Source: Orbicella franksi (lineage: Eukaryota). Taken from it: a stretch of 64,000 nt of DNA. This document shows, piece after piece, positions 6,171 to 18,325 of the stretch. Position 1 is the stretch's first letter. Every line of letters begins with the position of its first letter. Under the pieces are notes generated by a model. That model ran no database searches. It saw only the letters and a program-made list of their open reading frames with translations, and was not told the DNA's origin. Position numbers and translations under genes: made by a program. The DNA lies in contig OZ116698.1 in NCBI GenBank assembly GCA_964199315.1, positions 5,208,001 to 5,272,000 on the forward strand, read 5' to 3'.

Positions 6171-6189
6171 ATACTTACCTGACGCGGGA
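6171..6189 (+). ncRNA. U1: U1 snRNA 5' fragment (nt 1 to ~19)
   Basis: ATACTTACCTG is the invariant U1 5' end; it lies ~230 bp downstream of the U2 3' end; the following sequence has no U1 stem-loop I GATCA loop and is shared with 18067+. Confidence 0.75.
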
Positions 6190-6426
6190 GTGTATGGCCG
6201 GAGGCCCTACCATTTTGGTGCGGTTTTTCGTGACCCTCTTCAGTTTTTTGGTAAGTTTGCCAGTTTGATCTGGTTTTTTGGCTGTTTTTTAGCCGCCATA
6301 TTTCCTTCGGGTCTTCTTGTTGGCTTAGGGTCACCCATCCGGAATCTTGTTTTTGATAGTTAAGCCGGGTCACCCATCCAGTTGGGCTTAACTTGGTAGG
6401 GTCACCCATCCATCTGGGCCCCGGCC

Positions 6427-6609
6427 TGTTCGGAACTGAAATTTTGTGTTCATTTTGTGTAAGGCGCGTTGCCTATTTACCGAGTGGAGACTAGGTCTGA
6501 GTGATGACATGTTGTAAACGAAGAAACGTGAGCTGGACGTTCGGGTCGAAGAGCAGATGAATATTGATATAAATTTTGTTGCGTTTATGGAATAAATCGT
6601 TCATTTTCA
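6427..6609 (+). repeat. BEL 5' LTR
   Basis: TGTTCGGAAC...CATTTTCA with AATAAA near its end; 6 differences from 12247-12429 by manual alignment. Confidence 0.97.
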
Positions 6610-6627
6610 TGGTCCTTCGAGCCGGAT
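6610..6627 (+). promoter_or_regulatory. Primer-binding site complementary to the tRNA-Tyr 3' end
   Basis: TGGTCCTTCGAGCCGGAT is the reverse complement of ATCCGGCTCGAAGGA-CCA, directly after the 5' LTR. Confidence 0.85.
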
Positions 6628-6846
6628 ATTGGATTTGGAGAAACAGTTTCGACGATTGGTCGAGCAAAAGGAGAGTTGGATCCGTTTATTACTGCGAAGA
6701 AGTTGGTTTTCGCATATTGGCGATTTGGCGCCAAACAAACCACATGTGTATTGCATCAGCACTTTGAACGAGAGGAACTTCTGTGAATGTGCAGACCTGT
6801 AATTGTTGCGATTATATGAGGTTAGTAAAATTTGTGGTCTTTCAAA

Positions 6847-14068: not shown

Positions 14069-17000
14069 ATGGCTTTGTCCATAATCTCTCTTAATGTCAA
14101 CGGCCTTCGTGAGTCCTCTAAGCGTGATGGTCTTGTGCAGTGGTTGCGATCTCTTCCTGTCACTGCAGATGTTGTGTGTTTGCAGGAAACTCATTGTATC
14201 TCCGATGTGGAGTGTAATTCCTGGTTTTCTTCTGGATTTAGTTTTGTTCTTTCTCCTGGTACCCGTCGTTCCGGCGGCTCATTATCCTTTATCGATCTGT
14301 TCTGCGGCTAGTTAATTTTTGGTGTGAAGTTCCTGGTCGTTCCTTGTTGTGTGAGTTTTCTTTATATGATGTTTCATTTCGTGTGCTTTGCTTGTATGCC
14401 CCCAATCGCAACCCTGCTCAAGACCTCTTTTTCAATGGCATTGCTGATGCCGTTGACCCCTCTATTCCAACAGTTTTGTGCGGAGACTTCAATACGGTCT
14501 TCGACCATACCCTCGATCGTTTCGGCTCCTGTGCCGGTGATACCTCGAGGGAGAGTACTCCTGCCTTAACTCGTCTCTGACTCATGTTGTGTCGTTGACA
14601 TATGGAGATACCTCCACCCAAATTCTTCTAGCTTTACCTGAAACAGGTGGGACGGTCAATTTGCGTCCCGCATTGACCTCATGGGATGTCCTTATCCTTG
14701 GATTTCATCTGTGTCAGCTTGTGACATCGTTCCTTTTTCCTTTTCTGACCATTGTGCCTTGTTGTTTACCTTTTCTATTCCTGATGTCATCCCCCCTGGT
14801 CCAGGTTTATGGAAATTAAATGTCTCCATCCTTCAAGATACCGATTATACCAAATTGATCACTGACTTCTGGCTTTCTTGGCGTCTTGCTCAAAATAATT
14901 TTCCGTCCTTATCTGATTGGTGGGAGCTTGGCAAATTCAAAATTAAAGATCTAACAATTGGATATTGTTCCAAAAAGGCTAAAGAACGTCGGGCCGAACG
15001 AGCCCTTCTATCTCGTCTGGCTGATCACCTAAAATCTCATGTTGACCTTGGTGGTCTATCCTGCTTGGGCCCATATCAATCCACGCTTGCTGAGCTGTCC
15101 AGGTTTGACCTTGAGGCAGCTCGTGGTGCTCAAGTTAGGTCTAGGATTAGGTGGGTGGAGGAAGGGGAGCGGTCTTCCGCTTATTTCTTCCGTCTCGAGA
15201 AGAAGCGATCAGCTGATCGTCGTATTTCCGCACTGGGAGAGAGTGATGGCACTTTCACCTCTGACATCACTGGTCTTTGTTATTCCATCTCCTCTTTTTA
15301 TTCTGGCTTGTTCACCTCGGAACCTACAGATGCTGCCGCTTGCAAGTCACTGCTGAGTAACATCTGCTTGGCCTTGACTCCCGAGCAGGCCTCTTGTTGC
15401 AATGGTCTTCTGTCCGTTGGCGAATGCTGGTCTGCACTACTGGGTGGGCCAAACGTAAGGTGCCTGGCTCTGATCGCCTGCCCATGGAATTTTACGTTAA
15501 ATTTTGGGATGTCCTCGGTGAGGACCTTGTTTGTGTTCTTAATCCATGCTATCTTGATGGTTGTCTCTCCCTCTCTCAGCGCAGTGGTGTAATTTCTTTA
15601 TCTTTCAAGAAGGGTGATCGCCTTCACATTCGTAATTGGCGCGTGATCTCTCTTCTTAATGTCGATTACAAGCTTGCTTCTCGAGTCATAGCTGGTAGAC
15701 TCCTCAAAGTGTTTCATCTTGTGGTGGAGAAGGACCAAACTTGTGGTGTTCCTGGTCACTTCATCGGAGAGAATGTAGCCTTTCTTCGGGACGTTGTCAA
15801 CTATGCCACTCTGTCCAACGTTCCGGTTGCTATTCTCTCCCTCGACCAGGAAAAGGCTTTTGATCATGTAGAATGGTCTTTTATGCGTCAAACCCTTCAG
15901 TCTATGGGCTTCGGAGACTCCTTTGTCAGCTGAGTTGATCTGTTCTACAATAATGTACGCAGTTTTGTGAATGTCAATGGCTACCTGTCGCAACCTTTCT
16001 TCTTGTCTCGTGGTGTGCGTCAGGGTTGTCCTCTGTCCCCATTGTTATATGTCTTGGTTTCCGAAGTCCTAGCTGTCTCCATTCGCGCCAACCCAAGAAT
16101 CGTTGGTCTTTCTCTTCCTGGTGTGCCGGCTCCGCTGCCTCCTATCTCTCAATACACTGACGATACGTCCATCATCGTCATCTCTGATGATGCCATCAAA
16201 GCCACCTTTGAGACCTACTCCATCTACGAGAGAGGTTCTGGTTCCAAACTGAACCTCTCTAAGTCCAAAGGTCTGTGGCTTGGCTCGTGGAATGGTCGTC
16301 AAGACCCTCCCGTCAATCTCGACTGGTCTTCTACCAGGATCAAAGTCCTTGGTGTCTTCATCGGTGTTGGAAATCTTGAGGAGTGTAATTGGACGCCTCG
16401 TATCGCAGCTGTTGAAAACGTACTTTCTTCTTGGAGGCAGCGTCAGCTTTCTCTTCGTGGCAGAGCCCTAGTGATCAATGCCCTTGCTCTTTCCCGCGTC
16501 TGGTATGTGGCTTCACTTATCCACATGCCTGCATGGGTTCTCAAAGAGCTTAATACTCTGGCTTTCAATTTCTTCTGGAAGGGTAAACGAGACCTTGTGT
16601 CTCGTTCTGTTGTTGTCCAACCCTCCCTCCTTGGTGGTTTTTCGGTCGTGAGCGTCAAGTTTAAAGTGTGGTCCCTGGTTGCCCAGTGGATCAAACGCTT
16701 TGCCAGCTCCCCATCTAGCTGATCTGCTTTCATGACCTACTGGTTCTCCTCTTGCTTCAATGCCACCCCTGTTGATGTTTTTTCTCGTCCTTTGGATTTT
16801 GATCCTAGGGTTCTGCCTCGTTTCTACCAGTCGCTCATTCTAGCCTGGCGTTCGCTTGACGGCTCTTTTTCTGTTGGTCGCTCCTCTTTGGTGATGGGGT
16901 CGTCTTCACCTCACTTTCTGACCCCTGCCTCTGGGATGACGACCAAGTCTTGTTACCAGTACCTTCTGTCTGAAAATTTGGCTACCCCCCACTGTGTCGT

Positions 17001-17595
17001 AAAGTTCCTTCCTACGTTCGGTGTCCTTTATTGGTCTACTACGTGGAGGGAACTTTTCTTCTTCGACACCGACCGTCAGGTCATCGATCTTACCTGCAAG
17101 ATCGCTCATGGTGTCCTCTACACCGCTGCTCGTCTGGCTTCTTTTGGTTATGACTTTAACATTTCCTGCTTTTGTGGTCCAGTCTCCGAGACCCTTGAGC
17201 ATCTGTTTTTCCATTGTCCTTTGGCTTATAGTGTTCTTTCTTGGCTTCAGTCCTTAATGTTTGTGTCCTCTCCGTTGGCTCCTTCTCTGGTCTGTCGTCA
17301 TGCCCTTTTTGGTTTTAACTCCAATGAGTTAGCTGTGGTGCCTCGCGTTTTTGTTTACATTCTCAACGTCTGTAAATTCTTCATATGGCACGCTCGGAAC
17401 GATTTTCGCTTTCGCGATGTCCGTCCTGGAGCTGCCTCTGTGATCGAGAACGTCAAAACTCGTGTTTGCTTCCATCTTCCCATTCATTTCAAAAGGTTTG
17501 TGTCTTCCAGGAAACGTCGCTATTTCCATCGCCAGTGGGGGGCCCAAGGTGCTGTAGCATCCGTGGTCGGCGATCGTCTCGTTCTTCATCTTTAG
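14069..17595 (+). pseudogene. Family A ORF2 (APE endonuclease, RT, C-terminal Cys motif)
   Basis: SLNVNGLR, CLQETH, CGDFN, SDH; RVISLLNVDYK, QGCPLSP, QYTDD; CFCGPVSETLEHLFFHC; several frameshifts and stops. Confidence 0.92.
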
Positions 17596-18049
17596 TCTCA
17601 ATCTGGGTTGTGGGTCTTTTGTCTGTCTGAATCTAGACAGTTGTCTTTTGTCTGCTCGAATCTGGGCAGTAGCTCCATGCTCCTAATCTGAACGTTTTTT
17701 GTTTTTGTGTCCTCTCGTGCTGGGTCTCCTTTATTGGTGTACTGCACAGAGGCTTGTATCAGTTCTGTTTTTGTCTTGTTATGTTTGTCATTACGTCTGT
17801 CCCGTGATCGTCTTTGATGTCGTGTAAAGCCCGTGTCTGTTGAAGTGTGTTCAATTTCTGACCGAGGTAGGCAGGGTTCGATTCCCCGGCGAAGTTGGCG
17901 AACTGGCTACGTTGAGTAGGGGTTCCCTACCCTAGGTGGACCATCTAGATGGCTTTGCACTCCCAGCCACTACGATGGATGAGCTTGTAGGCCAGCAAGC
18001 ATTGCACTGCCCTTCGGGGAGCTTGGCTGTCCACCTTAAATATAAAAAA

Positions 18050-18066
18050 ACTTACCTGATGCGGGA
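18050..18066 (+). ncRNA. U1: Second U1 5' fragment (nt ~3-19), probable target-site duplication
   Basis: ACTTACCTGATGCGGGA directly after the family A poly(A); one mismatch to 6173-6189. Confidence 0.7.
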
Positions 18067-18325
18067 TTGTATGGCCGAAGGCCCTATCATTTTGGTACCC
18101 TTTTTGTTGTCCTTCTTTAATTTTGGTAAGTTTGCCAGCTTTTTGCTGGTTTTTGTGACTTTTCTAGCTATTCTCTGGGTGCCATCTTACCTTCGAGTCT
18201 TCTTGTTGATTTCTTGGTCACCCATCTAGTGTTTGGTTAAGCCGGGTTGCCCATCCATTGGGGTCCTCGCCCATCTGGGCTTAACCTTTTGCCTGGTGTT
18301 TATCATGTCGCCACCGTTTTTTTCT
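18067..18325 (+). mobile_element. 5' end of a second family A copy, truncated
   Basis: Aligns to 6190-6420 (TGTATGGCCG.AGGCCCTA, GGTAAGTTTGCCAG, GGTCACCCATC repeats). Confidence 0.85.

Follow-up and report, generated by a model that had tools for sequence, protein, structure and literature searches.

Evidence that a diverse lineage of Tx1-group LINEs uses the 5' end of U1 snRNA genes as its insertion site in Orbicella franksi

When a long interspersed nuclear element (LINE) is found between two copies of the first nucleotides (nt) of a small nuclear RNA (snRNA) gene, it has to be asked whether that gene is the site the element seeks out or only one of many places where it came to rest. The locus that raises the question lies in a 64,000-nt stretch of the Orbicella franksi genome (contig OZ116698.1, positions 5,208,001 to 5,272,000; hereafter the window), in which an earlier note, made from the letters alone, had described a Tx1 retrotransposon apparently specific for the 5' end of the U1 snRNA gene. 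Both U1-like tracts that it reported are present, ATACTTACCTGACGCGGGA at 6171-6189 and ACTTACCTGATGCGGGA at 18050-18066, the latter directly after an A-run (18044-18049), and the 17-mer pattern with up to two mismatches has three matches in the window against 0.01 expected from shuffled sequences. The reading that we favor, with a probability of roughly 0.88, is that a diverse lineage of Tx1-group LINEs integrates sequence-specifically in the U1 genes of a 5S-U2-U1 array, always in the sense orientation.

A covariance-model search for U1 over the whole assembly located a tandem 5S-U2-U1 array on the window's contig, 0.4-0.5 Mb upstream of the window. Its unit of 2,036 bp contains a 5S ribosomal RNA (rRNA) gene on the minus strand, U2 and U1, and the 5S-U2-U1 arrangement is also described for Acropora in the passages of a published paper that treat these genes (PMC8167085). 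U1 in this species begins with ATACTTACCTGACGCGGGAGGTACTG, so that window positions 6171-6190 are authentic U1 nt 1-20; the worry that the true U1 might diverge from the tract in the window after nt 11 is thereby settled. The window is collinear with the array over 5786-6190 (array unit 1116-1520, 96% identity), a segment that starts at U2 nt 35, takes in the spacer with the U1 promoter and stops at U1 nt 20. A Rfam search of the window gave no match to the U1 body, either at the gathering threshold or at E values up to 1, and several U2 and 5S pieces are present, all on the plus strand and interrupted by LINEs. The window lies in a decayed, degenerate distal part of the array. Occupied U1 units recur in the array at an exact spacing of 9,595 bp (C1:4881707, 4891302 and 4900897; C1:4937074, 4946669 and 4956264), which indicates higher-order repeats in which units and their insertions were amplified together. 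One lone intact U1 5' end lies off the C1 array, at C3:17517150, and is the only one on another contig.

The genome holds 85 U1 5' ends in a single (forward) orientation, 67 intact and 18 occupied. In a junction scan that did not depend on element family, the 18 read AAAA followed directly by CTTACCTG and then by the U1 body, the AAAA replacing nt 1-3. When the tails upstream of these junctions are clustered, 98.5% identity gives 12 groups and 90% gives 10; therefore ten or more diverged subfamilies have inserted at precisely one nucleotide, and the insertions at this site include many independent ones. The flanks of the window's own family tell the same story. Ten copies found with the window's 3' end have U1 from nt 3/4 downstream, of which six, 73-98% identical to the window tail, run through a complete U1 (L016, L019, L022, L023, L024 and L028) and four carry U1 nt 3 to ~18 and then the next element. 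On the 5' side, some copies follow the U1 promoter and U1 nt 1-15/20 (L031-L033, L035, L036, L040 and L041) and others follow an A-run and U1 nt 3-19, as members of stacks (L037-L039 and L042). The earlier note had held that random flanks, or a U1 19-mer that the element invariably carries at loci other than U1, would speak against a U1 target. Neither is the case: the tabulated flanks are not random, with a full U1 body in the 3' flank of six copies and 18 such genes genome-wide, and copies at off-target loci are without the U1 leader.

Two elements with intact open reading frames (ORFs), L044 and L052, occupy array units whose identity to the reference unit is 99.5%; each has U1 nt 1-15 upstream, nt 3-164 downstream and a target-site duplication (TSD) of nt 3-15. 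The same site is used elsewhere, since six homologues with 54-87% ORF2 identity, from six different ENA assemblies, are all located there: in two, the element is cleanly inserted, with U1 nt 1-18 on one side and nt 3-164/156 on the other; a third has U1 nt 3-164 downstream, and the remaining three are in head-to-tail stacks. For homologues, the ESM Atlas gives the taxon Cnidaria and nothing narrower. Sequence-specific insertion is a common trait of Tx1 elements, though not a strict one, and here it is seen as use of one U1 nucleotide by at least ten subfamilies and in six other assemblies. The shared junction positions, the 67 empty and 18 occupied targets and the consistent TSD are those of a site-specific LINE.

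Several observations pull in the other direction or narrow what can be claimed. Specificity is not absolute, given that seven to eight copies sit at non-U1 sites (C1 21.8-23.2 Mb; C5, C7 and C8), all of them 5'-truncated and none with a U1 leader. Certain occupied units arose from each other by duplication, as the 9,595-bp period and the clusters of identical tails show, so that 18 junctions do not equal 18 events. The A at nt 3 is indistinguishable from the A-run, and cleavage positions are read from junctions only. The duplicated U1 leader could have been carried in on RNA instead of arising from staggered cuts. Finally, the Tx1 assignment draws on a structure-based ranking of Swiss-Prot entries and on 32-34% identity to U2-specific elements, not on a reverse transcriptase (RT) phylogeny with Repbase references.

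The geometry of the junctions suggests how insertion might proceed. The 3' junction is invariant, an A-run followed by (A)CTTACC. In line with the TSD of ~17 bp proposed from the window, the duplication runs from nt 3/4 to nt 18-20 in most copies, including families with unrelated 5' untranslated regions (UTRs), and to nt 15 in the L044/L052 sublineage, where 5-7 extra unrelated bases follow; its length is 12-17 bp. The element had also been read as lying sense to U1, and all occupied sites have that orientation. We suspect that insertion occurs by target-primed reverse transcription, in which the element's endonuclease would nick the bottom strand within 5'-CAGGTAAGT-3', across from U1 nt 2/3-3/4, and the freed 3' end would prime cDNA synthesis on the short A-tail. 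The 5' end would then be attached at U1 nt 15-20, which is 12-17 bp farther downstream, so that nt 3/4 to 15-20 become duplicated. Such an event would leave the promoter and a 15-20-nt U1 leader in the upstream flank and a promoterless U1 without nt 1-2(3) in the downstream flank. Most of the site survives in the duplicated copy of the target, so that new elements could insert beside old ones and give rise to head-to-tail stacks, while a multicopy array with ~67 intact U1 genes would absorb the loss. In this scheme we infer the positions of cleavage, the order of stacking and the promoter used. The junctions fit a bottom-strand nick with a second event 12-17 bp downstream, and they fit a U1 leader carried by the RNA equally well.

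Which promoter drives the elements bears directly on this ambiguity. In metatranscriptomes from two coral studies, contigs span almost all of the element at a word depth of 25-98. Because the RNA runs comprise only 157-496 million letters as against a genome of ~500 Mb, DNA carry-over cannot explain this depth. One RNA contig spans the junction of U1 leader and 5' UTR, starting 12 nt upstream of U1 +1. RNA contigs of this kind define neither a start site nor a strand, two runs of raw RNA reads gave no reads on the element, and the capped chimeric RNA from the U1 promoter that the earlier note envisaged is hypothetical. Subfamilies share a conserved module of ~200 nt at the start of the 5' UTR, beyond which the UTR is no longer alignable. 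In the window this conserved module contains GGTAAGT (6250-6256), complementary to U1 nt 3-9; an GCCGCCATATT box (6292-6302), which we take to resemble a YY1-type site; and three copies of GGTCACCCATCC (6329-6340, 6368-6379 and 6400-6411), the antisense of 5S rRNA nt ~80-92. An internal promoter in the module, with its GCCATNTT-type box, is a live alternative.

Of the competing explanations, the one that survives best is that the U1 leader is not a true TSD. RNA made from the U1 promoter would start with U1 nt 1-20, and the 3' end of the cDNA would pair with the target so that homology guides the 5' junction, as proposed for R2, R1 and further site-specific LINEs that are co-transcribed. Such a process would account for elements that are always sense to U1 with an intact promoter upstream, for the RNA-library contig across leader and 5' UTR, and for the nt 18-20 junction of families whose 5' UTRs are unrelated; co-transcription of elements like these has been discussed (PMC4494074). 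It sits less well, however, with the start of the spanning contig 12 nt upstream of U1 +1, initiation at U1 +1 itself not being seen, with the sublineage joined at nt 15 through unrelated bases, and with a conserved 5' UTR module that could be an internal promoter. Off-target copies are also without the U1 leader, although this is a weak test when all are 5'-truncated. Promoters of the snRNA type are not known for efficient synthesis of long polyadenylated RNA, which we count against co-transcription. On balance we consider an RNA-carried leader somewhat unlikely and prefer a duplication produced by staggered cuts at U1. A ribozyme at the 5' junction was looked for as well, but no family matched in the window at E values up to 1 (Rfam; no model-independent structure search was made), and no hepatitis delta virus (HDV)-like ribozyme was among the findings.

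Elements of this lineage are ~5.7-6.0 kb long with ORF1 and ORF2, and several copies retain intact ORFs. The ORF2 product of L044 has Pfam matches to Exo_endo_phos (residues 6-230), RVT_1 (517-765) and zf-RVT (1006-1057), which is the Tx1 domain order, and its ORF1 product has one putative CCHC knuckle (residues 205-222), with two Pfam scores that each fall short of the curated cut-off. When a model of the whole ORF2 protein (mean predicted local distance difference test score, pLDDT, 80.6) was compared with Swiss-Prot models by Foldseek, the best match was ORF2 of Xenopus Tx1L (P14381, a 149-kDa protein; E 7e-67, 27% identity), with L1 ORF2 at 19-20% and jockey/R1 at 14-17% identity; the best PDB match by sequence was human L1 ORF2p. 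Identity to the genome's own U2-specific LINEs (L047 and L048) is 32-34%. The modeled structure thus supports placing the lineage in the Tx1 group rather than in L1, as the earlier note had done. Between L044 and L052, ORF2 is 70% identical, with pN (nonsynonymous) of 0.21, pS (synonymous) of 0.72 and dN/dS of ~0.10. The subfamilies therefore diverged as functional elements under purifying selection, with no decay in place.

Two smaller matters concern the elements themselves. A U1-like 17-mer inside the window element (16492-16508, minus strand) was considered as a functional target and rejected. It encodes a conserved SR(V/I)WYV motif and is a coding coincidence of one subfamily, the same place in other subfamilies having 5-7 mismatches. 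Separately, a 1.3-kb element without long ORFs occupies the same U1 site at L051:7687-9010 (C1:4880386-4881709), with a TSD of nt 3-19, a 5' end of its own (CACGCCTC...) and a LINE-like tail containing the AUUGCAC motif; related 5' ends occur in L015 and at L046:7885. It is likely to be a non-autonomous partner of the U1-specific LINEs.

How the lineage compares with known systems determines what is new about it. Keno is likewise an APE-type (apurinic/apyrimidinic endonuclease) Tx1-group LINE with an A-rich tail, and it too enters a spliceosomal snRNA gene in sense, at a single site toward the gene's 5' end. Its hosts are vertebrates, lancelet and Hydra and its targets are U2 snRNA genes, at U2 nt ~28-38, whereas the target here is U1 nt 3/4 and all copies of the lineage other than the off-target ones flank U1. 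The genome has U2-specific, Keno-like LINEs as well, but these form a separate lineage and produce little duplication or a small deletion, as opposed to the 12-17 bp duplicated by U1 elements. In the window, U2-specific LINEs are found in U2 genes at ~U2 nt 28-38 (5779-5786, 18472/18473, 30184, 35191 and 36321). Two intact U2-LINE families (L047:1657-7438 and L048:1678-7303) have ORF2 products of 1,154 and 1,149 amino acids with 57% mutual identity, and at their insertions U2 nt 29-37 were apparently lost, not duplicated.

Other elements provide further parallels. Tx1L of Xenopus laevis, the best Swiss-Prot match for ORF2, has the same domain order and is sequence-specific, but it targets the Tx1D transposon and is a distant relation in another phylum. 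Mutsu (5S rRNA) and Dewa (tRNA spacer) also reside in multicopy small-RNA arrays, with different targets (PMC3706591). Utopia (U2) and R2/R1 (ribosomal DNA) resemble the present elements in being site-specific LINEs of multicopy RNA genes and in forming tandem stacks with variable 5' junctions, and they depend on co-transcription (PMC4640811, PMC4494074); Utopia and R2, however, are of the restriction-like endonuclease type, R1 belongs to another clade, and all have other targets. The crocodilian SINEU elements combine Tx1-clade machinery (Tx1-Mar) with U1/U2-derived heads at the RNA 5' end (PMC4494074), yet there U1 is part of the mobile unit and a Mariner transposon is the target, whereas here U1 is the target. 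The only published group reported to target U1 is Dada-U1, zebrafish DNA transposons (PMC3706591, PMC4640811) that use a DDE transposase, an internal U1 site and a 6-bp TSD (GCGAAT), in contrast to a retrotransposon at the extreme 5' end. Instead of the DDE transposase, 6-7-bp TSD and subterminal inverted repeats of Dada-U1, the elements described here have APE and RT domains, an A-run end and a duplication of 12-17 bp.

In the literature that we searched, we rate U1 as a new target within a well-known kind of element. Kojima and Jurka listed in 2015, as reported transposons of snRNA genes, only Keno and Utopia (U2), Dada-U1 (U1) and Dada-U6 (U6) (PMC4640811), and the legend of Fig. 3 in a Tx1 phylogeny from the same year names U2, U5, 5S, satellites, transposons and microsatellites as targets, without U1 (PMC4494074). 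Searches of full-text papers found no later report of a U1-targeting LINE, the Repbase and Dfam catalogues being outside that scope, and the U1, U2 and tandem-repeat passages of the Acropora array paper do not mention insertions (PMC8167085). The family and its U1 target could nonetheless already be on record in a catalogue, such as among the Acropora entries of Repbase or Dfam; Repbase has many coral and cnidarian Tx1 entries, and one such entry, Tx1-1_HM, is cited in PMC4494074. Set against the 2015 list, the 2015 target legend and the later literature, this seems to us unlikely. U1 would then join the known targets of the Tx1 clade (U2, U5, 5S, tRNA spacers and microsatellites), having so far been reported only for the Dada-U1 DNA transposons.

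Least credible is a single ancient insertion in one U1 unit that was spread and diversified by unequal crossing-over or gene conversion with no ongoing targeting: although some occupied units are array-level duplicates (9,595-bp spacing), tails at least 98.5% identical come in clusters of 2-5 and the second-copy composite of the window is found again at C1:5159173, this is highly improbable when divergence among the elements greatly exceeds that of the flanks (ORF2 identity as low as 54-70% and tails below 90%, versus 99-100% for U1 and array flanks), ORF2 is under purifying selection (dN/dS ~0.1) with intact ORFs in several copies, the 5' junctions and the lengths of the A-runs differ between copies, the site is shared by unrelated types of 5' UTR and by the 1.3-kb non-autonomous element, and the 5'-truncated off-target copies imply that the family retrotransposes.

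Site-specific LINEs serve as models for the choice of a safe niche and are being explored as tools for targeted DNA insertion. The lineage is a natural data set in which many diverged, intact subfamilies under purifying selection, together with a non-autonomous partner, have one 20-bp site in common. It is therefore well suited to asking which residues of the endonuclease read the target, with U2-specific relatives in the same array as a built-in contrast. In addition, each insertion fuses a promoter and the 5'-splice-site-recognition sequence of U1 to a new RNA, which raises questions about interference with splicing and about mimicry of U1 parts.

On the latter question, the two ends of the elements have features of their own. 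Tails were compared from the window and from L054-L071, L045, L046 and L072-L074, and each of the 19 examined has CATTGCAC at a distance of 35-45 nt from the A-run. One type of tail has it as a loop of 10 nt on a 7-bp hairpin stem whose closing pair is C-G, and the pairing is upheld by covariation: 90% of cells are paired, four pairs have changed on both sides, and none of 500 shuffles reaches the observed value. In other tails AUUGCAC lies within an internal loop beside a CCC-UUCG-GGG hairpin, and one tail has 17 nt in common with U1 nt 63-79. The tail hairpin looks like U1 stem-loop II, the U1A/SNF site. At the other end, a consensus 5' splice site occurs within 110 nt of 19 of the 23 distinct 5' junctions, versus 0.6 expected from shuffles. 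One U2-specific element also has a 5' splice site, so that the U1 lineage may not be alone in having this feature.

One distinctly doubtful possibility is that RNA of the lineage imitates and engages the U1 small nuclear ribonucleoprotein (snRNP), beyond any recognition of U1 DNA by the element. We raise it because GGTRAGT, complementary to U1 nt 3-9, is near the 5' end of nearly every element, unrelated 5' UTRs and the non-autonomous derivative included; because a loop of the U1 stem-loop II type with AUUGCAC precedes the A-run in 19/19 tails; and because transcripts from the U1 promoter would begin with the 5'-splice-site-recognition sequence. If true, recruitment of U1 snRNP or SNF could limit polyadenylation, hold the RNA on chromatin or guide the ribonucleoprotein to the U1 array.

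The window locus itself (Table 1) is an old, decayed insertion, with copy 1 broken by a BEL/Pao retrotransposon and followed by the remnant of a second subfamily. The earlier note had described a full-length element. A LINE does begin after the U1 leader, but what follows is an 11.9-kb composite of a ~5.9-kb LINE with broken ORFs and a nested BEL/Pao element. Without that insert, copy 1 aligns end to end with its intact relative L044 at 86-97% identity, yet its ORF1 and ORF2 are split over several frames and the copy is degenerate. The nested element, which lies in the 5' UTR of the LINE, has long terminal repeats (LTRs) of 183 bp at 6427-6609 and 12247-12429, TG..CA and ~96% identical, and a 5-bp TSD, CGGCC, at 6422-6426 and 12430-12434. 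Its gag-protease-RT-integrase ORF (6999-11516; 1,505 amino acids) is still open, with Pfam matches to Peptidase_A17, DUF1759, DUF1758, RVT_1, rve and DUF5641.

Table 1. Positions of the features at and around the window locus, in window coordinates
Feature	Position	Strand	Basis
Upstream U2-specific LINE, splits off the U2 5' part; A-run end	5779-5786
U2 snRNA nt 35-192 (3' part of U2 gene)	5786..5943	+	Rfam U2 match, 125 bits
U2-U1 spacer including U1 upstream (promoter) region	5944..6170	+	collinear with L001 1274-1500
U1 snRNA nt 1-20, upstream target copy (nt 3/4-20 = TSD copy)	6171..6190	+	identical to intact-array U1
U1-specific LINE copy 1, first 236 nt of 5' UTR	6191..6426	+	86% identical to nt 7-246 of intact L044 element
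Nested BEL/Pao LTR retrotransposon, 6,003 bp	6427..12429	+	LTR pair and Pfam domains
U1-specific LINE copy 1, remainder, with the rest of the 5' UTR	12430..18049	+	91-97% nucleotide identity to intact L044 element
LINE copy 1, ORF1 remnants	12447-14009	+	tblastn frames
LINE copy 1, ORF2 APE-RT-zinc finger (zf) remnants, frame-shifted	14069-17592	+	tblastn frames; Pfam RVT_1 and zf-RVT on fragments
LINE copy 1, 3' UTR tail structure with AUUGCAC	17990-18034	+	ATTGCAC at 18001-18007
LINE copy 1, A-run, six bases	18044-18049	+
U1 nt 3-19 (one C>T change), downstream TSD copy, also upstream flank of next element	18050..18066	+
5' remnant (~230-270 nt) of second U1-specific LINE, diverged subfamily	18067..18335	+	74% identical to copy 1
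Array unit 989-1115: U2 upstream region and U2 nt 1-34; U2-specific LINE from 18473	18346..18472	+
Further degenerate U1-lineage LINE	60077..64000	+	76-82% identical to L044 (L019, L053)

The sequence after the downstream TSD copy had been taken for a second copy of the same 5' UTR. It is homologous, but at 74% identity it belongs to another subfamily and is a remnant of ~230-270 bp; 5' ends in L036, L038 and L040 are closer to it (87-93% identical over ~240 nt). The remnant is cut off and joined to array sequence, namely the U2 upstream region from 18346. The whole composite at 18031-18700 (A-run, U1 nt 3-19, 5' UTR remnant, U2 upstream region, U2 nt 1-34 and start of the U2-specific LINE) is present twice, its other occurrence lying 49 kb upstream at C1:5159173 (L039) with 90% identity over 670 nt, and it is therefore an old structure that was duplicated later. 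Near the right-hand edge, the degenerate LINE that starts at 60077 extends past the window by ~1.1 kb, to a junction between an A-run and the U1 body (C1:5273091). Four further stretches of the window (639-2100, 39544-41885, 46940-47443 and 50247-54363) hold degenerate Tx1-like ORF2 remnants on the plus strand, 25-60% identical to the U1 and U2 lineages.

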